From assembly GCA_977017575.1 (NCBI GenBank), contig CDRNVI010000143.1, positions 1 to 64,000 of the forward strand: 64,000 nt of DNA, written 5' to 3'. The position numbers were made by a program, and so were the translations under genes. This DNA comes from Paramoeba atlantica. Lineage: Eukaryota > Protista > Discosea. Position 1 is the first letter of the stretch; each line of letters starts with the position of its first letter. Positions 7,501 through 59,199 of the stretch are shown here, one piece after another. The notes below the pieces were generated by a model. That model had not been told where the DNA came from and did not search any database. It saw only the letters and a list, made by a program, of their open reading frames with translations.

Positions 7501-10411
7501 GCTTTAGGCTTCACCCATCTTATTAACTGATAAGAAAAATGAAAAAATCAGATTTTGCATTGATTTTAGAGCACTTAACAAAGTGATAAAGAAAGATTCA
7601 TATCCACTTCTGAAAATGGATGAAATACTTGCAATATTGGAGAATGCTTCTTATTTCTCAACAATTGATCTCACTGATGCATTCTGATCAATTCCAATCC
7701 ATTCAGATGATATTGAAAAAACAGCTTTTACAAGCAAATATAGCCTCTGGGAATTTCTTTCCATACCATTCAGGTTATGCAATGCACTTCCAATACAACA
7801 ATAATTCATAGAGGCTGTTCTAAATGGTTTCTTATGGATATGTTGTTTTGCTTATCTTGATGATATACTCACTTTCAGTGCATCATTTGAGGATCATATC
7901 AAGCACCTTGAACAAATCCTCACAAGATTGAGAGATCACAATTTCATCTTACAACTCTCAAAATGCTCCTTTTGCAGACCCACATTCAAAATACTTGGAT
8001 TTGTCACATCAAAAGATAGATTATCACCTAATCTCAAAAAAGTCAAAGCAATCAAAAACTATCCACTGCCAAGAACACCAAAAGAGGTGAGCAGATTCTT
8101 AGATATGATATTATGGCTCAGAAAATTTATACTAAGACTTTCAGCATTAATCACAAATCTTCAAAAAGCAACCCAACTGGATAACAAATCATTTAAATTG
8201 ACAAAAAAAGCAATTAATGAAATTGAATTGTTAAAAGAAATGCTTACTGATGAGACATGCATGGCTCACCTCAATCTCTCAAAACAATTCTACATCCATG
8301 TAAATATAAGCAAAACTGGTCTTGAAGCCATTCTTACACAACTAAATGAGAATGGTAATCACTGAGTTGTTGAGTATATATCTTATGTACTTACTGAGAT
8401 ACAAAGAAAATACACAAATCCAATCCATGAAGATTTTGGAATTCTTTGATCACTCAACACATTCAAATATTATATTTATGAATGTGATTCAATCATATAC
8501 TGCGATTGTAGCAGTCTCTCTGACATAATAAATGCAACTGAACACATGTCCAATCACAAAATGCTCTGTAACTGGATCACAAGAATCCTGCAGTATAATG
8601 TCTGTGTTATACACAAACCAGGCAAACTAATGGCAATTCCAGATGCCCTCAGCCATCATTACACTACATATGACACTGAAATGGAAACTGATGAGATAAC
8701 AAATATCTTTAAAGATATGGTTGAGACAGCAGTTAAAACTAGGAACAGTGAAACCAACAAATCTCTGGACAAACAATCTGACCTTTTACAAAGATTAAAC
8801 TTCCTTGAAGAACAAAATGCACATATTTCTGAATTAAAAACAATTGAAAATTTAGAACCTGACCTTTTTCTTTTTCAAAAAACCTCCACAAGTTTGTGGA
8901 GGAACACTTTTTCAAAAGAAATTGACCAACCAGTTAATCTTTCATGACTTGCTCAAATGCAACAGGAAGATAAACACTGTTTAAAATTAATCAATTATCT
9001 TCAATTTAAGACACTTCTTAGAAGAAAATCAGCTCTCAAATACCTACAAACACAATCTCACAAATATTGAATTGACAACCAAGGCATCTTTCAAAAAATC
9101 GATGAGATGTTCCTAATAGAAAAAGAACTGCCACCTACAGTTCTTTCCAAAGCTTTCTAGAATGAAGTAATTGACATCAATCATAACTCTCCCACAGGAG
9201 AACACTGAAAATTCGAAAAACTTTCCAAAGTTATTCGAAATTCATTCTATTTTGAACAAATGTATACTTACATTAAAGCATATTGTAACTGTTGCTTGGA
9301 ATGCCAAATAACAACCAAAACTGCCCAATTGTACATAGAATTAAATCCAACCTGCAACATACAATACTCTGGCCTGGTAATCCAGATTGACTGCACCCCA
9401 GGACCAAACAGAACAATTTGAGGAAATTCACACATCCTTACAGTTGTTAACATCTTTACAGAATATCTCTACTTATATGCTATCTCTCAACCTGATGGTA
9501 ATACATCTGCATCATTACTCTTCAAATATATTTGCTTACATTCAATGTCCTTAAAAATCATTACTAATAATAGAAGAGAATTTGCAAATGAATTAATTGC
9601 TAACCTGATTCATTTGCTTGGAATCAAACACACCTTGATTTGCCCTCTCCATTCATAAAGTAATGGAAAAGTCAAAAAAACACATCAAGTGATCAAAACA
9701 ATGATCTGTACTTTCATCAATGACTTCAAAGATGATTGGAACCTACTGATCTCACTTTTAAAATTTGCATATAACATATTTGAATTTTCAGTTACAAATT
9801 ATATGCCATTCTTTCTTTTCTATGGAAGACATTCAATCTTATCCATTGAGGCTTTATATGACATAGCATACCATCCTGTTACAACAGCACATGAGTATGT
9901 TAAAACACTACAAACTCAACAAGATATAGTATTTGCTTGGGTCAAAGACTAAAAACAAAAAGCAGCAAATCTTTACAAAAATCACTATGATGAAACTTAT
10001 TATACAATGATTAAAACACTGAATCTTGGAGATTCTGTCCTCCTCACAAAGGATAACAAAGACAGCTCTATAGGAAAGAAATACTGACCACTTTTCTATC
10101 AAAAAATCTACAAGGTCACTGGTATCCATTCCAATGGAACATATACAATCCAAGATTTCAAATAGGAAAAACTTCTACAAACTAAAAACATTATGAGATT
10201 AAAAAAACTAAAAATTCAATATGAATTAAATCATGAACCTGCAAACCAGGCACTCATAGAACAACCTGTCTATTTTTCTGAGGATGACAAACAAATTAAA
10301 TTTGATGACTTTGACCTAGGTAACAATTGTGACTATGAATTAAAGAAAATTCTTACTTATAAATTTGACTCACAAGGAAGACTTCATTACAAAGTTCAAT
10401 ACAAAAATTAA
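4572..10411 (+). mobile_element. Degenerate Ty3/gypsy (chromovirus-type) LTR retrotransposon gag-pol
   Basis: Motifs in order: protease CLDTGAG (6267-6275); RT RFCIDFRALNK, DSYPL and AYLDD (7853-7864); RNase H VNISKTGLEAIL..PDALS; integrase H..H/CxxC and SNGKVKKTHQ..YNIF..TNYMPFFLFYGR; chromodomain start YELKKILTYK..LHYKVQYKN. The order PR-RT-RH-INT-CHD is gypsy-type. Numerous stops; LTRs not identified. Confidence 0.93.
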
Positions 10412-10418
10412 GTTTCAA

Positions 10419-11300
10419 TCAAAAACCAAACTCTCTTTTTTGTGTCTTGTTAAGTTTATTAATTAATAAATTCAACCATTTCTTTAATGTCTCTAAAATC
10501 AAGAAATTACTTTTATTCAAAACACCACTTTCAAGCCTTTCAATCTTTTCCCTCACTTCAACCAGTTGTTGTTCAATCTCAGCACTCAATAACATTTTTG
10601 AAGTGATTGGAGTTGTTGAAGTTGGAGTTGAAGTACCAAGGATAGCAGTTTGTTGCAAAAAAGTGGTAAAAGCTTTGGTTAATACTTTGGTTCCATTATT
10701 ATCATTCTCACTTCTCTCATTTTCTTCTTCTTTCTTTTTCAATTTTCTTCTTCTTTTTGCTGGAAGAGAGCACACAAATGATGAGGAAGAAGTGTAAGAA
10801 AGAGAGTCACTCTCCAAATCAATTGCTCCACTGATTTGTTATACAAAAGTTTGGCCCATTTGACCATTTTCTTTAGATAGCAAATGTGTAAGTTCTACAA
10901 TTGTATTCCCACCTGAAAACTTGTAAAAACCAATTGTATTGTAATGACCTAATTTGTCTCAATTTGCATAACATTAAGCATATTCATGTTTAATTTGTTG
11001 ATATTTTATCAAAAAAGAATTACATGTTTAAGGCTTAAACTGATTGAGATTCCAAAAAGAGGCAACTTTCACAAAATATAAATACTTAGCAAGGTCATAA
11101 TCAGTTGGAACCTCATAAGCTGCATTTGAGTTATGAAATTTCTTCCAAAAGATTTCTGCTTTGATATCAAGAAGTTAGTGATGATCAAGTCTCTATTTTT
11201 TCACCACTTAAAAAATATTTGAACAAATTGTTACCTTCAACTGTAGCAGAGGTGAAACTCTTAGTTATTGGATCAACAAAGACACTCAGTTTTATTATTC
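10419..11300 (-). pseudogene. Antisense ORF remnant tail-to-tail with the gypsy chromodomain; function unknown
   Basis: The 132-aa track ORF extends upstream in frame through several stops (KAEIFWKKFHNSNAAYEVPTDYDLAKYLYFVKV...GAIDLESDSL). It contains an NLS-like PAKRRRK, and its stop lies 7 nt from the pol stop. Confidence 0.55.
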
Positions 11301-37432: not shown

Positions 37433-40416
37433 GTCAAATTGTTGTTGTTGTCGCTTCAGGTTTTCAACCAAAGAATCGCTTCTCTTTTGGTTAAACCATC
37501 AAAACCACCACCACCACCACCACCACCACCACCACCACTCGCCAGAACACCAACACAACCCCTTACTACACATCAATTCCCATCATCTCAAATAAAGGAA
37601 GAAGACACTGGAGCATATTGTTTTGTTGTCTTATCCGATTGCCCAACCTTCGAAAATACTGTTTCATCTGAAGATTGTCCCATTGAAAGATCCCAATTTC
37701 CTCCTTTTGTTCGAATTCAATAAATATCTCTTCAACATTGAAACTGAAAGTTCACCCAAAACCCCAAATATGCTTTTCCTTCAAAAAGAACTGAAATCAA
37801 AACCTCGCAGTAATGTACTTTTATAAGGTGATGAATTTAACCAAGGTTCAATAATTCCACCACCACCACCACCAAACAACAACCCGCCATGATCCTTATT
37901 CTTACTATCGCCATCACAACAACTCCTACTGCTGTTTCTGTTGCCCGCCATTGCTGCTGCCACCACCACCACCACCATCATTTCGATCATGGTGATGAGA
38001 AAAAAAAAGGCATCATCTCATTGAAGTTCAAAAAAGGTTTGAGGAATGAAGGAATACAAGAACCAACAGCTGAATTATCGAGAGCCCCGAAGCCGTTTCC
38101 GTCGAGATGATTGACTTTCCTTTAATGAATAATCTGTAATCCCACCACCACCACCCATTCTCAACAGAATTTGTTGTTCTCAACATATAAGGTAAAAACA
38201 TGTCTTTTTCGCTCGGATTCATATTCAACATCAAACGAAGAGAGGAGACAGAGATGTTTCCTTCTCTCCTTCCTCCAGCAGCAGCAGCAGCAGCAGAGGA
38301 GTACTAGCAGCAGCTTTCTCCTCCTCCGTTTCCGTCGTTGTTGTTGTGTGTTGTTGTTGTTGTTGTTGATGAGTTGTCAACGTTGTGTTGTTCTTTGTGG
38401 TTGTCTCAAGAAGAGAAGATGTTCAAAAAAATTCAAAAAAAACCTTTTCGAAAAAAGGTTATCATTGTCCTCTCTCTCGCACCACACCCTTAGTCTTTCC
38501 ATGTGTACCTCTAAAAAAAGAAAACAAGAAAACAAGAAAAAACAAAAATGTTTTTCTTCTTTTCAAAAAAAAATAAATTAATTTTTCACAATAAAAAGAA
38601 TTCTTTGAAACAAAAAAAGAAAAAACCTTTTTTTGAGCTTAAACCCTCTCTCCTCAATATGTTATTCAAACATCAGAAGAAGAGAGAGAAAGAAACACAA
38701 CTTTTGAACCCCCCTCTCTCTCTCCGCCCCCCTCCCTTCTTCTCTTGACTTTCATTTGTTTTGAGACTCAAAATGAGAGAAAAGAAAAAATAAATTGAGT
38801 ATTCAACTTAATCTTTTCTTTTTTTTTCTCTTTGTTATATTCAACTCTGCTGTTATATTATCGTTGTTGCCTCTTCCTTTAAAAAAAGAAAGAAAGAAAA
38901 AGTAATGTTGAATTAGTGTTTTGAAGGATAAAATGAAAAAAATATTATCTTGTTGTTTTAAATTAAAAAAAAAAAAAAAGAAAACAAAAAACCTTCTTGA
39001 AACCTCTTTCTCTTTCTTTCTCTTCTCTTGAGTCTCTTTCGCTCTTCCCCCCCCCCCGAAACCCTAAATCTCTTTGGATGCCGTCGATTGATTCTCTTCA
39101 ATAAATCACTAATTACATAAGTTATTAAAAAATATCTCTCTTCTTTCATAATATCAAATTAGAACAAACCAGCAAAAAGAAACGATTTATCACTGCTGGA
39201 AAAGCTTGATGTTCGCTCTCTCAACAAACAATAACAACAACAACAACACATGCATCAATTTTGTGTGAGATGATCTTTCCTCATCTTTCTTTTCCCCCCC
39301 CTTTCTTTCGTGGTTTGCCATCATAACACATCTTCTCCCTCTCTTTCCCTCTCTTTCCCTCTTCATATACTCACAAGACCAAACATTGACAACACAACAA
39401 AAGGATCACTGGAACAACCCAAAACCCAAACCCTCTTTTCATTCCAAAAACAAAAACAAAAACAAAAAAAATCGGTGTCCCGAATTAAAAGACACCTTTT
39501 CAAATTGTTCATTTTTTTTTTATCAAAGAATATTTTTATTTGTTTCAAAAATAAATATCTTGTTCAAAAGAAACCCAAAAGAAACCCAAACACCCAACAA
39601 GATAAAATATGTGTTCATCAAACAATAGAAATCAAGAAGAGAAAATCCTCAAAGTCAAGCGTACAGTATAATATGACCACGAAATTCATGCGATTTTTGA
39701 GCGGAGTCCACAATTAAGCAGCACCTCTCACAAGAATTCCTTTTTCACAACTCAACTTGAAGTTTTTGAATAACAATTGTTTTTGTTTGAATAAACAAAC
39801 AAATAAACAAAAAATCAAAAACTGTAAGCTTTCATTGAATATTCACTTTGGGTTAAAATTCATTACAGGGTAGTATTCTGTTGCCTGCCATTGACTTTTC
39901 CAGAAACAAAAAGTCTGAAAAGGTGAAGAAAGACTTTCTGCAACGCGGAGTTTTTTCGAGTTGATGAAAGAAATGAAAGACAAACAAATATTTTTTTTCA
40001 CAGCCCTGATTTAATTAGCCCCCATTCTTGCCAGTTCTGTGACATCATTTTCGGGGAATGAGAAAACAGGAATGGGGTGCATTTGTTTTCACTAGCTTGA
40101 AGAGATGGATCATATCCCTTTCAAAGCTCTTTAAAAAAAAAGCTTCTGTGCTAATCTTTTGGAGCTCTTTTTCAAACCCAAAATTCGAAACACTTTTTCG
40201 ACAACGGCGACAAAAAAATCGAACAAAAAATCTGGGGGGTTTCATTTGAGAAGAATTGGAGAGGAGTTTACGCGCGGAAAAGGAACGATTTTTGGCTCGG
40301 GGTTGTTCTTTTCTCTGGAAACCACAGGCCTGAACATTTCTAGGAGAGGTTGGAAGCGCTTTAGATCCACGGGGTGGACTGAAGTTGTGGAAAACTTATC
40401 CTAAAAAGTAAGGAGG

Positions 40417-41487
40417 ATGGAAAGAGAAAAAAAAAACCCTTCCCCCCCCCCAAACAAACGAAGAAAGCTTTTGGAAGAACTCCCTAATGAAAAGCTCCTC
40501 TGCCCAAAACCTGGCAACACAAGAGGCCAAGGACTGAGCGACGAACCGCAACGTGACCTTCCGGCAACCTCAAAGGAATCGATCTCACCAAATGTCTCTG
40601 ACAACACGAACCCCCCCCCCAAGAACGAAGAGAAAAAAAAGAACAAGAAATCGAGGTTTTGCATGGATAGAATTCCATTGACCTTAACCAAGAACCAGAT
40701 GCTTACCTGTGGGTCAGGAAAAAGGATAGATAAAAACACTTTTTTGGATGTAAACTGCGAGGGAAAGTCTTGCAGGGCACACTTTTTCAAGAAGTTCTTT
40801 TCGGAGGACGAAATGCTTCGTTTGAAAGATCGACTTCTTCAGTGCCCAAAACAATACTGGGAAAGAAAAACAGATAAGAGGGGGACAAGAAGATTTCTTT
40901 ATTCTGGCCACTGGAAGCATCGGTTTTACAACCTAGCCTTTGGGGCTGGAAAGGCTGGAAAATTGGAGCTCGAAAACCCGTTTTTGAAAAACATTTTGGT
41001 CGAGTTGGGGAAGAAGGTCTCTCGTGAAGCTTTGTCTCTGAAGAGGCCTGACGTTTATCTTCCCATTCAAGAAGCTGGCTTCGAAGAACAAGACTTTGGG
41101 ATGTTCCATTTGTTTATGTGTCCTGCCGGTCGATCTTTTATGCATACAGATGATAACAATTTTGTTTCTTGTATCTTCTCCATCAGTCTTGGGTCTGGAG
41201 ATGGGGACGGGCTTCATATGGGGGGATGCGGAGTGGACTTCAATTTGCGAGTGGGAGATCTTGTGATTGCAGACACCGATATTTTTTTTCACGGTTCTCC
41301 AAGCTACCAAGGAAATGAACACCCCAAAATTATTTCGGAAAATGACAGACTGGTGGGTCTCTTTATTCTCCATCGAAAGTTTATGATCATGAAGGGGGTT
41401 CCAGCTGATGATTTGGAGAGAGAACCCTATGAATTTCGAACCATTCCAAACCAAAACCAGAAAAAGAAGAAGGAAGTTGATATTTAA
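40417..41487 (+). CDS. TET/JBP-family 2-oxoglutarate/Fe(II) dioxygenase (intact, intronless, 356 aa)
   Basis: H243-T-D245 (FMHTDDNN), a jelly-roll segment GLHMGGCGVDFNLRVGDLVIAD, H292 (FFHGS) and R311 (DRLVGLFILH) match the HxD...H...R arrangement of TET/JBP enzymes such as Naegleria Tet. An upstream DKRGTRRFLYSGHW motif and an N-terminal NLS-like PPNKRRK are also present. Confidence 0.82.
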   Translation: MEREKKNPSPPPNKRRKLLEELPNEKLLCPKPGNTRGQGLSDEPQRDLPATSKESISPNVSDNTNPPPKNEEKKKNKKSRFCMDRIPLTLTKNQMLTCGSGKRIDKNTFLDVNCEGKSCRAHFFKKFFSEDEMLRLKDRLLQCPKQYWERKTDKRGTRRFLYSGHWKHRFYNLAFGAGKAGKLELENPFLKNILVELGKKVSREALSLKRPDVYLPIQEAGFEEQDFGMFHLFMCPAGRSFMHTDDNNFVSCIFSISLGSGDGDGLHMGGCGVDFNLRVGDLVIADTDIFFHGSPSYQGNEHPKIISENDRLVGLFILHRKFMIMKGVPADDLEREPYEFRTIPNQNQKKKKEVDI

Positions 41488-41720
41488 TAATTAAATTGTT
41501 TATTTTTTTTGTCATTAGCACTCAGTTGAGTCCTCTCTACGAAAATTTTTTCCCCCTTTCTCCACTCTTTTTTCTGAAAAACCAGTTTGATCTTTTGTAA
41601 ATATTATTCTTTTGCCAAAGGGTGTTCAGAATAAAAGGAGGAGGAGGGGAGAGGAGGGTGTAGACACAATAATAAAAATAGATTGCTCACAAAGGAAATT
41701 TGAGAAAACTTTTTGATTTA

Positions 41721-44700
41721 TCAACCTTTTGTTCCGCCCAACTTGGTTCTTTTTTTAGGAAGTGGTTTCTTGGTTTGTTTTTTTCTTTTGTTGCTCTGAG
41801 GGAAAGGCAAAAGTTCATTATCATAACAACAACAGGGTTCCATTTCATCTGAAGGATTCTCCCAAAAACTATGAGCATACAGGTAATAAAAAAGATGACG
41901 TCGAAAACCTTCACAATCGTCCAAGGTAAAATCCAATCCAAAGTTTTTGATCAGACAAAATCCGACAAAACAAACCATGACTCCACACTCTGTCATGTTC
42001 TTGGGGGGGGGGGGGTGAGGTGAGGTGGTGATCAAAGGGGGTTGTGTCAGAAAATATTAAAAACCAAAAAGATTAAACAACAAAAAAAAGGCAAGTTTTT
42101 TAACCTGACCCTGCTGTGGGGTTGTTGGTGAGCTATGAATAAATTCTGGGGGTTGTTCTTCTGGGGGTATTTCCTCTTAAAATCATTTAACAACAATACC
42201 TAAAAGATGAGAAGGGTAAAAAAAAAAAAAACTTAAGCTGAAAAGAAAGAAACAAAAAAATGAAAGAGAAAAGAACTGAAAGGTTCTTCGAATAAAAGGA
42301 ATTTTTGTGGTAGAGACTGTCATAACAATCAAGAACGACCCTTCTTTTCTGTTCACAAATATACCCTACAAGAAGGATCCAATGATTCTGGCTTACAAGA
42401 CAAGGCAGGTAAAACGTTTTATAATCCCAGATAACCACTTTCTATAAATTCAAAACAATTATTGGCAAGAAGATAGATATGGGGGAAAATTGAAAAACAA
42501 AAGAAAATAAAAAAAACTTACTTCCAAATAAGTTTGAGTTTGTTTTTGATACTGTTGTGTGTCATCTAACATAAAGGTGGGAAGTTCAACCAGTTCATCC
42601 TTCAGAGCATTTCCCTTTAGGAGAACTTGAAAGTAGAGACTGACTATCTGATAAAAAAAAGAAAAAGATAATCAGCAAAAGAGGGGGAGGGCTTGAGTGA
42701 AAAGGAAATTCAATAAAAGAAATATTTTCCTTTTGAACCTGTTCACTCAGTGGACTTGTTAAAATACTCTTAAAATCACTCGGGGAAATGGGGTATCCAC
42801 CGCTGAGGGTGGATACCCCAAAATAGAACTGTGTCTGCATTCCATAAGATTCCAAGTTTCTTTTTGGAATTTCAAGTTGTTTTTCAGTTGGAATAAATCT
42901 TTTCCAACGCTGTAGCTCGTGATCTTTAAAAATTAAAGTTTCAACTAATTGCTTGATATGCATTAACTCCTTCCTTCCTTTCTTTTCTAATGTAGTATTA
43001 TGTGGATCAGCCTTGAAACAAAGAAGAAAATAAAGTCAATTTTAAGAGAAAAACAAAAGTATGATGAACCAAACCAAACCCCCATTTCTTGAAAAACATC
43101 CTCTTTTGATGCCTTTAATTGAGATATCATCCCTTCATTATGAGTATGGCAAGAGGCACTCGGATATATTGAAATCTTGGAAGGGTATCCTTTTCCTTCC
43201 TTTTGATTCTCCCATTTTGCTGTCTCTGCATGTGTACTGGGTATAAAAGAGGGAGAGAATGAGGAGGAGGAGGAGGAGGAGGAGGATGAGAGAGAAGGAG
43301 AAAGAGAGAGAGAAGATGAATGAGAAGAAAAAGAAGAATGAGAAGAACGAAAATTTGAAGGAGAATGAGAAATAGAAGGAAAAGAAGGAAAAGAAGGAGA
43401 AGGGGACAATGAGGGAGCTGAAGGAAACAGAGAAGGAGGAGAAGAAAATGGAGAAGAAGAGAAAGAAGGAGAACAAAGAGAACTGAGAGGGGAAGAAAAA
43501 GAAAGAGAAGGGGAGAATGAGGGAGAAGGAGAAGGAGAAAATGGAGAAGGAGAAGAAGAAAATGGCGAAGAAGAAGAAGAAAATGGCAAAGAAGGAGAAG
43601 GAGAAAATGGAGAAGACAGAGAAGAAGGAGGAGAAGAAGAGAAAGAAGGAGACTGAAGAGAAAAAGAAAGAGAAGACAACTGATGAAAAGAAGGCAATAG
43701 GGGAGATGAGGAAAACAGAGAAGGAGAAGAAGAAGAAGGAAAACTTGCAAAAGGAGAAAGAACTGGCGAGTGTGAAAAACAGGGACTTGGAGAGAAAGAA
43801 GGAGGATGAGAATGAACTGGGAAAGGAATAAAAGAAGATGGAAAATTACTCATTTTTGGGGTTGATGATGGGGGAAAAAGAGTTGTGGAAGATTGGGAAA
43901 GAGAAAAGGGAGGGGAAGAAATGTGGATTGGAGGGGATGTGGTTTGGAAAGAAGGAGATGGAGAAGGAAAAGAAGAATGTGAACTTCCTGAGAGATGAGT
44001 GGAAGGAGAGAAATTACTTTGGGATGGGAGTGGAAAGGAAGAATGGGAAAAAGGAAATTGAGAGTTTTTTCCTGGTGATTGAGAAAGAGAAGAAGGGGAA
44101 GGGGAAGGGGAAGGGGAAGGGGAAGGGGAAGGGGAAGGGGAAGGGGAAGGGGAAGGGGAAGGGGAAGGGGAAGGGGAAGGGGAAGAGAGGTTAATTGGAG
44201 TGGTTTGGGAAGACATGTAGTGTGATGAAGGGTTGAGAGAGCGGGTGTTGTGACGATGAGAAGAGGATTGATAATTTGTTATTGGATCCAAAGTATCCTG
44301 AAGGGGCTGGCTACACAAAGAAGCATACTGATAAGCTGATTTGCAGGCAACAGAATTAGGTAGTTTTGTTCTTTTGAGGAGGGGGGGTTGCTTTGAAGAA
44401 CCAGAGGGAACAAGTTTTGAGGAGTGACCCTGATTTTGGTAGAAGGAAAGAATTATTAGAAATCTGCTTTTGAGTTTTCATATTTTATTTTTAAAAAAAA
44501 CAATTTGAAATTTTCAGAAAACAACAAATTTGGGGGAAAAAAGGGTCAACAAAAAATACCTCACGAATAAGTCGAGAAGGTTCATTTGCACTTATTTTGC
44601 TTGCTCTGTTTTCAAGTTTTTTCTCTGATCTCAATGCCTCACTTCGCTCCATCATCCCTTTGATCAAGGCATTCATTTGGATTGAAAAAGTTCCTTTCTC

Positions 44701-47700
44701 TTGACTGCTCACTCCTTGCCTACGTCTACCTCCAAATGGCTTTTGGGCCCAACAATGAGAACGAGCTGCAAGAATGGCTCCTTCAATTGCAAATCCTGCT
44801 CTTCGTGGAAGAGGGTATCTGTGTTGTGTATGTCAGAGGGGAGTGACTTTATTCTGTGTTGCAGAAAAACTGAAAATCAAAAAAGAAGAATGGATATTAT
44901 GAACCATCATTTTTAAAATTTTTCAACACCACAAAAATAATAAAGAAAAAACAAACCTCAATAACTCCCAATGAAGGTGATCATGGAGGGTATGTAAATA
45001 AGGAGCCCAATAAAGAGGGGAGAAATTACATTCGTTATATTTTCTTCCCCAAAGAAGGGAAGCCTTTCGGACAATATTGATCTCCTGGTGAGAGAGTTGA
45101 TATGGGGCTGAAGCCATTTGGAGAATGTCATAAGTCAACGTTAGAAACTCATATTCTGGTTCAAATGTGTTTCGTTCTGAATCTTCAATTAAAACATCGA
45201 TGATCGATAAATCAAAATCTGAATAACAAAAATCATGAAAAAACTTTTGAAATTTTTTTTTCTTAATAAAATTATTTGATCAAAAAAAGAGAGTTTTTGT
45301 TTGTTTGGAAAAAACAAGAAATAGTAAATCAACCTTTTGCATTCAACAAAGCTGCATTAAACGTCGAAAAAGGAAGGACTTCTGGTTCCTCTTGTTCATG
45401 TGAAATGCTTTTGACTTTTTCACTTTGGAGATTTGAATCCATCCATTCAGCTAATTTAATAAGATATTCATCATAAAGAAAATCAACAGCTCCTTTTCGG
45501 GCTAAAATAAATGATTTTTTTTGAAAACAAAAATATATTGTCAGTTGCAGAAAAATAAAGAGAGAGAATGTAATAATTAAGATATTCAAAAAAAAAAAAA
45601 AAGTATTTCAAAAAATATTATTCTTTTTTTATTATTCATAAAATTTTAAAAATAAAGAAGATATCAAAGAAAGAAGAGAAGAATAAACCAACCAGTTTTA
45701 TTGGGGAAACCCCTTAAAATCTTGATCCATTGAACGTAACTGGGTCTTACTTTTTTGATTCTCTCCCAAAGGTTGAATACCTTTTGTGATGGATCTGGAA
45801 TTTTCACTCCTCCAATGAAATAAAAAGCAATTCGAATCGTTAAATCATGAGGTGAATCTATTTTCTTTTTCAATGAGAATCTTATTCTTTTCAAAAGTAT
45901 TATTTTCAAAATATTCTTTTTTTAACTTACACGGAGAAACATCCATCACAAAAAGTTTAACAACATTTCTACAAGTCCCTTCAACAAAGTGGATCAAGTC
46001 CAAGTTGTGGTCCCATGGTTGCGATGGAGTGATTGGAGGATTTCTCATTCCCATTTGATTCATAAATTTTGCAAGACTGTTCTTGGATCCCTCCCAGCCC
46101 TGAACCAATTGAAAATCGCTTTTTTTTTGTTCTAAAGTCCACCATGTATGTTTTTGATCCAAGTTACCAACAAGATTAATTGCCAGTTCATCATCAGCCT
46201 CAGCAAAACTTTCAAAGATACTATAACCACCAAATTGATTATCCCAAAAGTGATGCTGACAAAAAAATATGGGCGGGGGGGTGGATGTTAGTAAAAACAA
46301 AATTATTTTTTTTAGTTGAAATTATTTTTTTTTTCTTAATTATTTTTGAAATTTTTCTTCTTTTATTTTCTTATTCATTTTTATGGAGTAAATTATTTTA
46401 ATAATTTTTTGGAAGAAGCTGCAAACCTTTGTATGATCATCCCAAAGCCCTCCATCATCCTTATCTCGAACAATGTTACAACGCCAACAAGGCCTTTTTG
46501 ATGTGTGATGAAACATTGATTTGCCACCATGACCAAAAAGAAGTGAAGAGCATAACATGTCATGTGTTTCAGTGAATGAAATTGTTCGTTCCTTGAAATC
46601 TGAACACTGAATCTTTTTCTAATAAAAATCACAAAAGAGCGCCAAGAGAAGAAAGAGAGAGGAGAGAGGGGAAAGAAAAAGTAGGTAAAAAAGAGAGGAA
46701 AATTAATGAAATTAATATCAAACGAAAAATTAAATTAATTTTTTTTAAAAAAAAAATTAAAAAAGTCAAAAATTAAATTAAATTAATATTAATATTAATA
46801 TTAATATTAAATTAAAAGCATTACAAAAAAATACTTACCTGGTAAATCATCTGATAAATCGGAGATATCTCTTCTTGAAAGGTTTTAAAGCTCTCTTTCA
46901 TTACAAAGACACCCAAACTTAAATTGAGGACTGCTCTCCAAGTTCGAGTTCCTTTTGCCCACCACTCTTCATCACCACGTATCAATTTCACAACAACTCC
47001 TTTGTTCCTTCGATCAAAAGAACCCCCATCAGCAGAAAAGATCATCTTCAGCTTTAAATTTTCCTCTGCATTAGCAACACCACCAATAGTCGCTTCTTCT
47101 TGGTGATTCATGTTGTTGTTCACCCGATCATATTCATCCCAAAGAGAATACTTGTTGCCCTCCCAATCATCATCAAACATTCTATTCACTTCACCCTCAA
47201 CATCATTCACTCTCCAACCATGGTCTGTTTTTTCCAAGGGAATCTGATCTTTTAGTTTTTGGAACCAATACTTGAACTGACAATCTGAAAATTCCCAACC
47301 CAGTTCAGAATTAAGACCTCGAATCTGATACCTAGTGAGACCCAATCTTAGAAACAATCTTCCAAAAAACTCTGCCTTTTCCTGTTTTTTCATACACCGA
47401 TATTTTTTTGATACTTCTTGCGCATCATTTGGGAGTCCAAAAAAGTTTCTAATCTGTTGTTTCTGAGAAAAACCACTCCTCCCCCTCCTTGCATTTCCAT
47501 CATCCAACTGAAAGAGTTTCTCTAAGACTTCAACAATCTGAGAAGTGTTGCAATCACTTAAAAGCTGAGCCAAGAAAGAGGTTGGATTTTCAAAACCAAG
47601 TGATCCCACAGCTTCATTCACCCAGTTGGTTCGGAGGAATTTCTCATCTGAGGAACTATGGTGATGGCAAGGAGCAGTCACAGGAGGAGTAAAAGTGGCG

Positions 47701-47999
47701 GTGGTGGTGGTGGTGGTAAAGGTACTGTTGGAAGCAGCAATGGGGAGTGTGGTGGTGGTGGTGGTGGTGGAAAAAGAAGAGGTGGTACCACCTCTTCTTC
47801 TAGTCTAAAAAACAGAAATTATTTTTCTTGCAGTGTCATCACTTAACTTGACTTGAAGAATAAAAAGACTCTTCTCTTTGCAAAAAAAAAAGACCTGTTC
47901 CTGTTGTCCTTGTTGTGGAAAAACTTGAGGAATCACTCCCATACCCATCATACTCTCAGCAGTTTGATCAACAGCAGCAGCAGCTCTTTCTAATTCCAA
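41721..47999 (-). CDS. RAG1/Transib/Chapaev-like DDE transposase fused via a Ser/Pro linker to a C-terminal Ulp1/SENP (C48) protease, ~1,550-1,600 aa
   Basis: Exons: 47999?-47895, 47804-46839, 46618-46427, 46255-45931, 45857-45693, 45501-45334, 45218-44957, 44818-44560, 44429-43080, 43011-42739, 42647-42522, 42441-42277, ~42199-42105, 41999-41721. All are GT-AG and phase-consistent except one ambiguous junction. Transposase motifs: FSADGG (D at 47028-30), SLGVFVMKESFKTFQEEISPI, ETHDML (D at 46559-61), PCWRC, DLIHFVEG, APYLHTLHDHL, FAIEGA. Protease motifs: SEQIVSLYF, LPCLVSQNHWILLV, YDSL, PQQGQNMTECGV. Confidence 0.78.
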
Positions 48000-48069
48000 A
48001 CACCAAATTCTTTCAGAATAGCAACACTTTCAAACCCACCAAAAAGAAAAAAGACAAACAGAAACTTTA

Positions 48070-51000
48070 AACCCACCCAACTACACACACACACACAGGT
48101 GAGAGAGAGAGAACTCTGGAGAAAGAGAAAAGAAAAAAGATTAGTGTTAAAAAAGGAAGGAAGGGGAGGAGGGAAAGGGGAGGGATAAAATGAATGTGGT
48201 AATCTTTATAATACATGCACACATCATTGATATTTGACAAACAACCTCTCAATAATCGATAAGGGTTTAGGGTGTCCATTCACCTTGCAATCCAACACAC
48301 ACACAAACACTTTCGTGCACAACACTCTCAACACTCTCCAAGAGTGTGCTTTGGGAGAGCAAAACGTAGCCAGGACCAAAAAATGGAGCCCACACCAGCA
48401 AGTTAGAGAAAGGCACTGGTTTGTCAAAGTAAAATCATGCACAGTTAATCCCAACTACTTCCAAGGAGGAAACTCACGGGGGTTCCAGAGTTCCATCGAA
48501 AAATCCCAACTTCAAACCCAAAGAGAGACAACCAAAAAAAAAAAAACAGCGAAAAGGGTGTCCCCCCCTTGGTGTGTCCCTTCTGAGAAAAACAGAAACT
48601 GACTGGAGAAAGAAAGGGGTTTCATTGAATGGAGGGGGAAATATGAGGGGAAAAACACAAAGAAAAAGAATCAAAGAAAACATATATGACCAAAAACAAA
48701 CACTAAAACCCCCGATGAGATTCACAACAACAACAACATGATGGTGGAAGTGGGGTGATAGAGCACAGAGCAAGGGGGGGCATCCTCCGACAAACTCAAC
48801 AATCAGACATTAACAAAAACAAACTCTCAGTTTAAGTTCTCCTTTTATATTAAGAATTCTATGAATTTCCAACAAACATCTTAACAACAAAGGAACAATA
48901 CAACAGCAATTTGTGATGAAACACAAATAAAGACCATCCAAAACGCTCCCTAAACCCTTTTGGGAAAACCCGAAGGAAACACACAAAACAACACATCAAA
49001 TCAGGAAGCATCTTTGTGAGTCGCAACACACACACACACTTTGATATTTTTAACAAACAATAACAATCTCTCGATATATTGATAAAGGGTTTTAGGCTGT
49101 CCATTCACCTTACGATTGGTGGGGGGAGGGGATATGGCAGGAAGGAACTAAAAGGGAAAGAGAAAAGGAAAAGATTAGTGTTCAAAGGAATGAAGGAGGG
49201 ATAGAAGAAAAAAAAGAGGAAGAGAATAAAAGAAAACAAACATAACAGTTATGCAACGATGGTGGTGGAGATCAATGGCAATCTTTGTGACATATTTGAT
49301 AAACAATCTCTCGATATATTGATAATATTGGTGTCCATTCACTTTGCAATCCAACACACAAACCCTTACCTCAATTAAAACACCTCACAAACCTGATGAG
49401 AACTGAAAGAGAAAAGAGAAAAGAGAAAAAAGAAAAGAGAAAGGAAGGATTTCGTTCAGTTCAATGTAAGGGGGAAAAGGGAAGAAATACAAAGCAAAAC
49501 AAAAACAAAACAAAAACAAAAATAAAACCAATGAATTTTACAACAATATATTATTATAGAAGTTGGTGTGGATCAATTAAAACAAAAAAAAACAGAGAAC
49601 TGCCAGTTCAAAAAACAAAAAAAGAGAGAGAGAAAACCAGATGATTGTTTGGGGCTTTTGAAAAATTATTGTCGAATATTTTAGGAACAACACACGTCGT
49701 GAAACAGCAGCACACTTCCGGAACACAAGAAGTCAAGAAATTATCCAACAATAACAATGACATCTCTCTTTTTTTTTAAAAAAAAAAACATAATCAGGAA
49801 AAAAGAGAGAAAAGAGAGGGAAAAGAGAGGGAAAAGAGAGGGAAAAGAGGAAAGAAAAAGAAAACCAGAAAAGGAGAGTGAACACACAACAAAGCCTTTG
49901 AAGAAGAGAAACATGATTCTTTTTTTTAACAAATATATTTACTTGCTGATTACAAAACTCATCTCCCTTCGAAAAAAAAAATCAGTTTGGAACAACAATT
50001 AAAAGAAAAGAAAAAGAAAGAGAAAGAGAAAAAAGAAGAAAAGAAAGAAAAGAAAAGAAAACCAAAAAAAACATTGTAAAAACTGTTCAAACTAAGGAAA
50101 CAAAATTTTAGAATCTTATTTGGTGAGAAGAAAGAGAACAAAAAGGACACACCAAGAGGAGGGGGTAGGAGAAAACAAAAAGAAAACAGAAACAAAAAAG
50201 AAATGATCTATCAATCGTCAAACGAATGGAGAGAAAAGACAGTCAAACCAAAAAAAATCAAAACAACCACCTTTTATCATGAAAAGGAGGGGGGAAACAC
50301 AAAGAAGGAGGAGAATAAAAGAAAACAAAAAAAAAAGAAAACAAACACTAAACACCATGATTCGCAATAATAATAATTGGTAACGGCAAGATATTATCGC
50401 TTCAAACCTTATCAATTAAAACCCCAACAAACACCCACAAGCAAGAGAGAGAGAGAACTCTGGAGAAAGAGAAAAGAGAAAAGATTAGTGTTAAAAGGAA
50501 TGAGGGGGAGAGAGGGAGGAAAAAGAGGAAGAGAATAAAAGAAAACAAACCCTTCATATAACAATGCAACAATGATGGTGGAGATCAATGGTTTCTTTGT
50601 GACACACACTACTGATATATTGACAAACAATCTCTCTTAATATTGAGGCAATTCAACACACAAACACTTTTGCACGCAACAACAACACTCCCCAAGAGCT
50701 CTTTGCAACGCAACAGCAAAGTGTATTGCTTGATCATCACCCAAAACCCTTTCAATCAAGACCCACATCTTGAATGTGGGAATAGCAGCAGCAGGAATAA
50801 GTGGTTTTAAAATCCTTATCAATTAAAACACCTCACAAACCCTGATGAGAACTGAAAGAGAAAAGAGAAAAGAGAAAAGAGAAAAGAGAAAAGAGAAAGG
50901 ATTTCGTTCAGTTCGACGGAAAGAAATACAAAACAAAACAAAAACAAAACAAAAACAAAAATAAAACCAATGAATTTTATAATAATATATTATCGAGGTG

Positions 51001-58966: not shown

Positions 58967-58976
58967 AAAAAAAAAA
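58967..58976 (-). terminator. Pol III T-run terminator downstream of tRNA-Lys
   Basis: T10 on the minus strand, 1 nt after the discriminator base. Confidence 0.75.
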
Positions 58977-58977
58977 C

Positions 58978-59050
58978 AGCCCCCGGCGGGGCTCGAACCC
59001 GCGGCCACTAGATTAAGAGTCTAGCGCTCTACCGACTGAGCTACGGAGGC
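58978..59050 (-). tRNA. trnK-CTT: tRNA-Lys(CTT)
   Basis: GCCTCCGTAGCTCAGTCGGTAGAGCGCTAGACTCTTAATCTAGTGGCCGCGGGTTCGAGCCCCGCCGGGGGCT: acceptor GCCTCCG/CGGGGGC, anticodon stem CTAGA/TCTAG with loop CTCTTAA, and T-loop GTTCGA. Confidence 0.97.
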
Positions 59051-59199
59051 AATTTGATAAAAATCGGAAAAAAAAATGGGTTTAAAAAGGATTGGGGGAG
59101 ATACGACACCACCACCACGAAAACCTCCCCCCCCCCTTTCCTTCAAGTCACCAACCAAATGAAAAATAATTGTGGAAATTATGTATTTTGGCAATATGT

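Follow-up and report, generated by a model that had tools for sequence, protein, structure and literature searches.

A 64,000-nt stretch of the protist Paramoeba atlantica (contig CDRNVI010000143.1, forward strand; hereafter the window) carries a transposon whose main gene appears to join a transposase to a SUMO-type peptidase. The best overall explanation, which we consider likely, is a multi-copy DNA transposon with terminal inverted repeats (TIRs) of the CACTA/EnSpm-Mirage-Chapaev-Transib (CMCT) clade, encoding a transposase-Ulp1 gene and a convergent dioxygenase gene. The window is matched at 99.6% by contig ctg4003l (L001) of ENA assembly ERZ24900291. Three public sequencing runs (X1, X2 and X3) were compared with the window, and X1 is catalogued as "RNA?", so that its contigs are called RNA-like here. 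Family tests were run on single exons or on uninterrupted open reading frames (ORFs) of paralogues.

The gene model stems from a three-frame reading of positions 48100-41600, with the pieces joined at GT-AG sites. It comprises 14 exons on the minus strand (47951-41721) separated by 13 GT-AG introns of 68-220 nt. The chain leads from a DDE transposase through a 450-codon Ser/Pro exon into an Ulp1/C48 peptidase domain. The exons and their support are as follows, with P0015-P0021 denoting homologous ORFs and L005 a paralogous locus.

47951-47895, minus strand: exon 1, the second coding exon in full-length copies; GT-AG chain and comparison with full-length copies.
47804-46839, minus strand: exon 2, helical N-terminal region and first catalytic Asp (SADGG); colinear with P0015-P0021, and an RNA-like contig ending at 46618 has 50 nt at 46839-46888.
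46618-46427, minus strand: exon 3, second catalytic Asp (ETHD) and CWRC zinc motif; homologue colinearity and RNA-like contig.
46255-45931, minus strand: exon 4, DLIHFVEG region; homologue colinearity.
45857-45693, minus strand: exon 5, its 3' border an intron position common to distant homologues; the ORFs P0017, P0018, P0020 and P0021 end at the same ..GFF point.
45501-45334, minus strand: exon 6; an X1 contig over 45040-45218 with 30 further nt in depth bin 45301-45500 fits the predicted exon-6 end.
45218-44957, minus strand: exon 7, HTLHDH zinc motif; 38% identity to L005 and an X1 joint at 44957/44818.
44818-44560, minus strand: exon 8, catalytic Glu (AIEG); X1 joint omitting 138 nt with GT..AG ends.
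44429-43080, minus strand: exon 9, 450-codon Ser/Pro-rich linker in phase 0/0; sole frame open throughout, with a 411-nt X1 contig inside.
43011-42739, minus strand: exon 10, start of the Ulp1 region; an X1 contig ends exactly at 42739.
42647-42522, minus strand: exon 11; GT-AG chain.
42441-42277, minus strand: exon 12, Ulp1 catalytic His (NHW) and Asp (YDSL); Pfam Peptidase_C48 match and RickCE alignment.
42199-42105 (or 42110), minus strand: exon 13, Gln motif and a CCCCC/CCC polymorphism at 42163-42167; X1 joint 42105/41999.
41999-41721, minus strand: exon 14, Ulp1 catalytic Cys (TECG), basic tail and stop; SENP1/SENP5 profile matches.

An earlier note on this DNA had described consecutive GT-AG exons staying in phase from the DDE core through the Ser/Pro exon into the Ulp1 domain. 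This chain is present, with exon 13 of the window needing a donor GT at 42109. Every motif named in that note recurs in the same order in the spliced model, where the transposase carries D278 (SADGG), D361 (ETHD), C385/C388 (CWRC), DLIHFVEG at 491, H700/H705 (HTLHDH) and E724 (AIEG), followed by the Ulp1 residues His 1400 (NHW), Asp 1420 (CYDSL) and Cys 1470 (TECG). The ATG at 47951 could not be upheld as the start of the family's protein, since full-length copies carry an upstream zinc-finger exon.

Exons 2-5 align in order with P0017, P0018, P0020 and P0021 (28-36% identity), whose ORFs are uninterrupted and run on continuously across the place of every junction. Colinearity with distant homologues extends over exons 2-8. 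The paralogous locus L005 matches residues 135-564 (E 4.5e-41) and 627-713 (E 1.7e-13) of the spliced model. The intron position at the 3' border of exon 5 is conserved, as the same four ORFs all end at ..GFF. The exon chain is thus beyond chance, given the colinearity of exons 2-5, the L005 match and the conserved ..GFF intron position. L005 itself (9980-12844 on contig ctg3980l of ERZ24900291) represents a paralogous family at 27% identity, with C2H2 fingers, the series D, D, CxxC, HxxHxH, E and a shared intron position.

The RNA-like contigs lack five of the 13 predicted introns. Two contigs omit 44819-44956 and 42000-42104, which have GT..AG ends on the minus strand and correspond to introns 7 and 13. 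Further X1 contigs stop at the exon borders 46618, 45218 and 42739, and their leftover letters fall on the preceding or following exon (50 extra nt map to 46839-46888, and 30 extra nt lie in the depth bin 45301-45500). The locus, or its counterpart in the X1 strain, is transcribed and spliced at these five introns. Within the Ser/Pro exon, the 411-nt X1 contig covers 43620-44030 with zero mismatches and exon-like depth.

The junctions that would make the fusion are 44560/44429 and 43080/43011, and both are exact phase-0/phase-0 borders of the 450-codon exon, as previously proposed. Exon 9 has 1350 nt in phase 0/0 and encodes a disordered linker that is 37% Ser and 18% Pro. Of the three frames, a single one stays open through the entire exon plus flanks of normal complexity. 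The 3' part of the element occurs in two diverged cassette versions, described below, and the consensus of four copies with the other version has an intact exon-9 ORF of 497 codons in the same phase. The other version uses the same acceptor (..NQ|GHSSKLV) and continues to a GT donor after ..TEILPK, and its next exon opens in phase right after AG (IDEEIE..). Stops within exon 9 of copy L002 come from a private 223-bp insertion, and frame breaks in L004 come from private 1-2-nt insertions. Both versions, 35-40% identical, therefore appear to keep the in-phase layout, because the consensus exon 9 is intact and the breaks in single copies are private. Since exon 9 is symmetric, its skipping would still give an in-frame transposase-Ulp1 protein.

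Several observations weigh against a fusion. Among the X1 contigs listed, none spans 44560/44429 or 43080/43011, and X1 coverage is zero over 44101-44500. Exon 9 is interrupted in individual copies by the 223-bp insertion with stops in L002 and, in L004, by several insertions of 1-2 nt. On the coding strand, pyrimidines abound in the Ser/Pro region, whose other two frames also have open stretches of 140-390 codons. An open frame in this region is by itself weak evidence, because such a strand makes open frames cheap. The L005 family ends without an Ulp1 domain or a dioxygenase within 10 kb, so the fusion would be specific to the window family. Accordingly, the claim of a fusion in one ORF holds for the in-phase exons but not for direct RNA evidence at the two decisive junctions: the transcript check in X1 contigs found the interior of exon 9 covered, with no listed contig bridging either border.

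These same observations could point to two genes, with the transposase ending soon after exon 8, the Ser/Pro region acting as spacer or untranslated region and Ulp1 being a separate cargo gene like the dioxygenase. Read-through past exon 8 meets a stop 22 codons on, and exon 10 offers an in-frame ATG (MHIKQ..) at 42963. The decisive junctions unseen in RNA, the X1 coverage gap over 44101-44500, the scarcity of stops in all frames of pyrimidine-rich DNA and a related family (L005) without Ulp1 would also fit. However, canonical phase-0 GT and AG sites flank exon 9 on both sides in both cassette types and a single frame is open from end to end, which makes separate genes unlikely. Transposase and Ulp1 quite probably form one polypeptide, as suggested by the in-phase exon 9 in two diverged versions.

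The C-terminal exons can be securely assigned to an Ulp1/C48 domain from motifs and profiles, because two exons match consecutive parts of one family in the right order. Exon 12 alone, a 55-residue exon, matches Pfam Peptidase_C48 (PF02902) at positions 79-119 (E 0.002, 18.4 bits against a cut-off of 20.7); every C48 match lies below the curated cut-offs, which is a point on the other side. A two-sequence profile of exon 12 aligns NHW...YDSL to the His and Asp of the CE-clan enzyme RickCE. For the exon-14 profile, the sole top PDB matches are SENP1 and SENP5 (E 0.07-0.14), aligned on the catalytic Cys, with SENP1 matched over residues 181-219. In the Atlas, C48 clusters make up 26 of the 40 feature neighbours of exon 14. 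The motifs NHW, YDSL, PQQGQ (in the CCC allele) and TECG appear in the order His-Asp-Gln-Cys, and His, Asp and Cys are kept in the second cassette version, which is 39-50% identical here. The C-terminal Ulp1 domain reported earlier is thus borne out by its His/Asp/Cys motifs and by Pfam C48, SENP1/SENP5 and Atlas C48 clusters.

Continuity through exon 13 depends on the allele. At 42163-42167, X1 and X3 have CCC, whereas the window and X2 have CCCCC. The RNA-supported donor of exon 13 is the GT at 42104, which is in frame only with the CCC allele and then yields ...TTPQQGQ|NMTECG..., a canonical C48 Gln-Cys region, in a 1559-residue ORF. With the same donor, the window allele meets a stop right after the joint. 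An in-phase reading of the window sequence instead needs the GT at 42109, 5 nt upstream of 42104. The in-phase reading through exon 13 is therefore kept in the CCC allele with donor 42104, whereas in the window it would depend on the GT at 42109, which is not the donor used in the RNA-like contigs.

The transposase core is a RAG1-fold DDE enzyme, as judged from the structural model of a paralogue, whose top hits are RAG1, HzTransib and BbRAGL only. In a Foldseek search with the AlphaFold model of paralogue P0017, almost all of the first ~35 ranks are RAG1 or HzTransib (E 5e-3 to 0.1). VIA-align with this model recovered 30 RAG1/HzTransib/BbRAGL entries at Z 6.2-7.8 over ~185 residues, followed by the next unrelated chain at Z 3.8 and Hermes at 3.2. 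The model was built from an 11-sequence alignment and has a mean pLDDT (predicted local distance difference test) of 57, with 77-87 in the RNase H part. On this low-confidence model, the RNase H fold resembles that of RAG1, including the pre-RNase H part and the zinc-binding insert. This fold evidence comes from a 27%-identical paralogue at mean pLDDT 57 and not from the window protein, which must be counted against the assignment. A protein-language-model feature search with window exon 2 retrieved RAG1 Pfam families at 0.86-0.92. The D, D, CxxC, HxxxxH, E series is kept in the paralogues P0017, P0018, P0020 and L005.

Sequence relatives are very rare, with only 11 matches to the core among 1.84 billion proteins. 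Word-index protein searches with exon 2, P0017 and the family profile returned only the locus's own ORF and two metagenome fragments. Pfam models for RAG1, RAG1_RNase_H and RAG1_pre-RNase_H matched neither the exons (E<=1) nor P0015-P0020 (E<=0.1). No match was found on exons or paralogues for Transposase_21 (Tnp2, EnSpm) or for the transposase/CxC models of the Kyakuja-Dileera-Zisupton (KDZ) group, which was also absent from the Atlas neighbours. Across all exon pieces, C48 was the sole Pfam match. The PDB profile search with the family profile found C2H2 fingers only and no RAG1/Transib chain, and the PDB sequence search with exon 2 likewise found C2H2 fingers only and no RAG1.

The D-D-CxxC-HxxxxH-E series is a hallmark of the whole CMCT clade, and the C(2)C and H(4)H motifs as well as CAC..GTG ends are CMCT features (Kojima 2025, PMC12730594). 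The element has this series, and five copies have 5'-CA..TG-3' termini; a target-site duplication (TSD) of 2-5 bp was not seen in two copies. In the Atlas fold search, EnSpm (Transposase_21) clusters reach scores similar to those of the RAG1_RNase_H cluster, with unannotated Mucoromycota proteins among the results as well; the structural nearness of Transposase_21 corresponds to TM scores of 0.24-0.42. The element files as a separate, unnamed CMCT lineage and not as a Transib, because CMCT features are present and the specific tests for Transib, EnSpm and KDZ failed. The description of the core as RAG1/Transib-like thus stands for the RAG1 fold, supported by the paralogue model, but "Transib-like" is too narrow given the CMCT-wide motif series, the CACTA-like termini and the equally near EnSpm models. 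Of the profile searches and structure prediction suggested earlier, the former gave no RAG1, EnSpm or KDZ Pfam match and the latter a RAG1/Transib/BbRAGL fold for P0017.

A true member or sister of Transib/RAG1, instead of a separate CMCT lineage, seems quite improbable. RAG1, HzTransib and BbRAGL are the sole strong structural matches, RAG1 Pfam families appear in the feature search and the terminal heptamer CACTTTG resembles the CACNNTG of Transib and recombination signal sequences (RSSs). To our knowledge, however, structures within CMCT have been solved for RAG1/Transib alone, so matches in the PDB cannot separate Transib from the wider CMCT clade. The EnSpm clusters score like RAG1_RNase_H in the Atlas, and none of the exons or paralogues is matched by a RAG1 model of Pfam. 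The gene has many introns and encodes a C2H2-like finger at the N terminus. The ends carry a CAC heptamer, but their TIR measures only 9 bp and no 5-bp target duplication was seen. A KDZ element can be dismissed as very improbable: the TET/JBP cargo and the Ulp1 fusion resemble Zisupton and fungal KDZ elements (literature summarised in PMC12730594), but no KDZ/CxC Pfam model and no KDZ Atlas neighbour was found, the fold matches RAG1/Transib, and the C(2)C, H(4)H and CAC..GTG features are those of CMCT. The earlier expectation that the core would not be assigned to KDZ therefore holds, with no KDZ profile matched.

The separate CMCT lineage is a multi-copy cut-and-paste TIR DNA transposon with many copies in different flanks. 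The window holds the following parts of the element.

39844-48084, minus strand: 5'-truncated copy (~8.2 kb) of the 9.4-kb TIR DNA transposon; homology to L002, L003, L004, L007, L008 and L009 from 48079-48084 to 39844.
39844-39852, minus strand: 3' TIR (...CCCAAAGTG on the element strand); reverse complement of the 5' end CACTTTGGG of L002, L003, L004, L007 and L008.
39844-40158, minus strand: conserved 3' terminal block with 96% identity to other copies; copy comparison.
40159-43948, no strand assigned: divergent cassette with the second half of the Ser/Pro exon, the Ulp1 exons and the dioxygenase gene; no nucleotide similarity to other copies.
40417-41487, plus strand: intronless 2-oxoglutarate (2OG)-Fe(II) dioxygenase-like ORF (TET/JBP-like), convergent with the transposase gene; motifs conserved in three versions.

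The full element is represented by L004 964-10372 (9409 bp), with ends CACTTTGGG...CCCAAAGTG. At least six copies besides that of the window (L002, L003, L004, L007, L008 and L009) share the 5' end CACTTTG(G/A)GACAAAAAAA and the 3' end ...TTTTAACCCAAAGTG in unrelated flanks, with a TIR of 9 bp. The exon-2 ORF falls into a nine-member cluster of near-identical products, spread over several contigs. A domesticated host gene was considered and dropped, given the many copies with TIRs and different flanks. The two copies with both ends have no TSD (L004, gtt | gag; L008, att | aat), which counts against the family assignment, with the caveat that only these two copies have both ends and that recombination between copies could have separated the original flanks. 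L008 also harbors a nested insertion of ~2 kb inside the transposase region (8416-10420).

The window copy matches from element position 1341 on, and the first 1340 bp, including the 5' TIR, are absent from the whole window. Also missing is the first coding exon (L004 about 2072-2250), which encodes a Cys/His finger. Homologous fingers stand at the N terminus in the P0017 family, and the profile of that family matches GLI/WT1 C2H2 fingers. In the family, the main gene has 14-15 exons and begins with this C2H2-like zinc finger. Because of the 5' truncation, the cassette swap and the frame break in exon 13, the window copy is probably non-autonomous. Over window positions 44900-45900, G>A and C>T transitions prevail among the differences between copies in X2 and X3, which would fit deamination of methylated cytosines or a process like repeat-induced point mutation.

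Identity between the window and the other copies is 96% over 48079-43949 and 40158-39844, with no nucleotide similarity in between (window 40159-43948 compared with L002 13694-17526 and L004 6456-10056). The divergent stretch has its parts in the same order in both versions: first what remains of the Ser/Pro exon, then the Ulp1 exons, which share 35-40% amino-acid identity, and finally the convergent dioxygenase ORF (39%). The whole layout is conserved in the two cassette versions despite 35-40% protein identity. In an exact search of the assembly, the dioxygenase product of the window was present at the window locus only, and X2 contig depth over the cassette is about 1/4 to 1/3 of that over the transposase part. 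Judged by these comparisons, subfamilies of the element seem to have exchanged the cassette through recombination.

The dioxygenase ORF lies between the Ulp1 end and the 3' TIR within the same element. The motifs MH(T/Y)D (HxD), HG (distal H) and DRxVGLFxxHR (R) are conserved in three versions, and the ORF likely encodes a 2OG-Fe(II) dioxygenase. The TET/JBP type is tentative. Pfam Tet_JBP (PF12851) matched the L004 version only (E 0.0098, 15.6 bits, below the gathering score of 34.9) and not the window version, so that motifs and one sub-threshold Pfam match carry this assignment, a further point that speaks against the overall explanation. The AlphaFold model from three sequences has a pLDDT of 38.8, and its weak Foldseek matches to 2OG oxygenases were set aside as proof. 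PDB sequence searches with the ORF and its profile gave no match.

The window is AT-rich and starts with ~980 bp of CCCTAAA telomere repeat, i.e., plant-type (TTTAGGG-type) telomere repeats in the host protist. An Rfam scan of the window matched tRNA alone. By eye, a sequence just before the 5' end of the element in L002 (8150-8210) resembles a portion of a tRNA arm. Some 700 bp farther from the element, L002 7409-7504 shares 81% identity with window 58967-59063, which includes a tRNA-Lys(CTT) at 58978-59050. An unrelated repeat of ~280 bp is shared at 85% identity between window 48571-48851, upstream of the truncated end, and the flank in L003 (7245-7526), in opposite orientation relative to the element.

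The domains suggest how such an element might act. The zinc finger and the helical N-terminal region would bind subterminal DNA, and, by analogy with its RAG1/Transib relatives, the DDE core would act on the CAC ends by nicking and hairpin formation. The tethered Ulp1 would deSUMOylate chromatin or repressor proteins at the element, and oxidation of 5-methylcytosine would fall to the dioxygenase. We infer that peptidase and dioxygenase might together counteract SUMO-dependent and 5-methylcytosine-dependent silencing of the element. If the fusion and both activities are real, this would be a compact mobile element that removes two kinds of silencing mark, SUMO from chromatin proteins and 5-methylcytosine from DNA. 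The group in which RAG1 originated would also gain a deep branch, in a lineage with almost no database relatives. It is possible, though rather doubtful, that this unnamed CMCT lineage with its transposase fused to a SUMO-type peptidase carries the Ser/Pro linker-Ulp1 part and the TET-like dioxygenase as an exchangeable anti-silencing cassette. Such a cassette would imply recombination-driven swapping and long-term selection on both enzymes.

Among known systems, Transib/RAG1 (HzTransib 6PQN; RAG1 6OEM) provides the best structural matches (Z 6.2-7.8), with the same order of catalytic residues and zinc ligands. The spacings here are 83 (D1-D2), 24 (D2-C) and 19 (H-E), compared with 108, 19 and 20 in mouse RAG1. 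In contrast to Transib/RAG1, the element has no sequence-profile match, a C-to-H insert of 312 residues vs 207, no 5-bp TSD and no long RSS-like TIR, and it has many introns and extra domains. Zisupton, of the KDZ group, shares a C-terminal Ulp1 on a DDE transposase, and fungal KDZ relatives carry TET/JBP genes, whereas the element has a RAG1-like fold and no KDZ motifs or profiles.

Ulp1 fusions had been described in the earlier note as typical of Zisupton and not of Transib/RAG-like enzymes, which is incomplete, as plant CACTA Tnp2-ULP1 proteins have been published (Benjak 2008, PMC2528002). An Ulp1 fusion within the CMCT clade is thus not new. The plant proteins likewise combine a CMCT transposase and Ulp1/C48 in one predicted protein, in elements with CACT... 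ends. The P. atlantica element differs by the missing Transposase_21 match, the 450-residue Ser/Pro linker, the dioxygenase gene and a very distant lineage.

TET-carrying CMCT transposons (EnSpm, Plavaka and ESTA) have been described from fungi, with no mention of Ulp1 or protists (Kojima 2025, PMC12730594). Like the element described here, they are cut-and-paste transposons with CA..TG ends, a D, D, C(2)C, H(3-4)H, E transposase and their own TET/JBP-type gene, and for ESTA the kinship with RAG1 is likewise seen only by structure-based comparison. The element differs from the fungal ones in its protist host, its Ulp1-fused transposase and the absence of a TA or 3-bp TSD. TET/JBP-carrying transposons have been published only from fungi and Ulp1-fused CACTA transposases only from plants, and here both appear in one protist element. 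What is new is the combination of a TET-like gene with Ulp1, along with the protist host, the lineage, an architecture joined by a Ser/Pro linker and the apparent exchange of the cassette.

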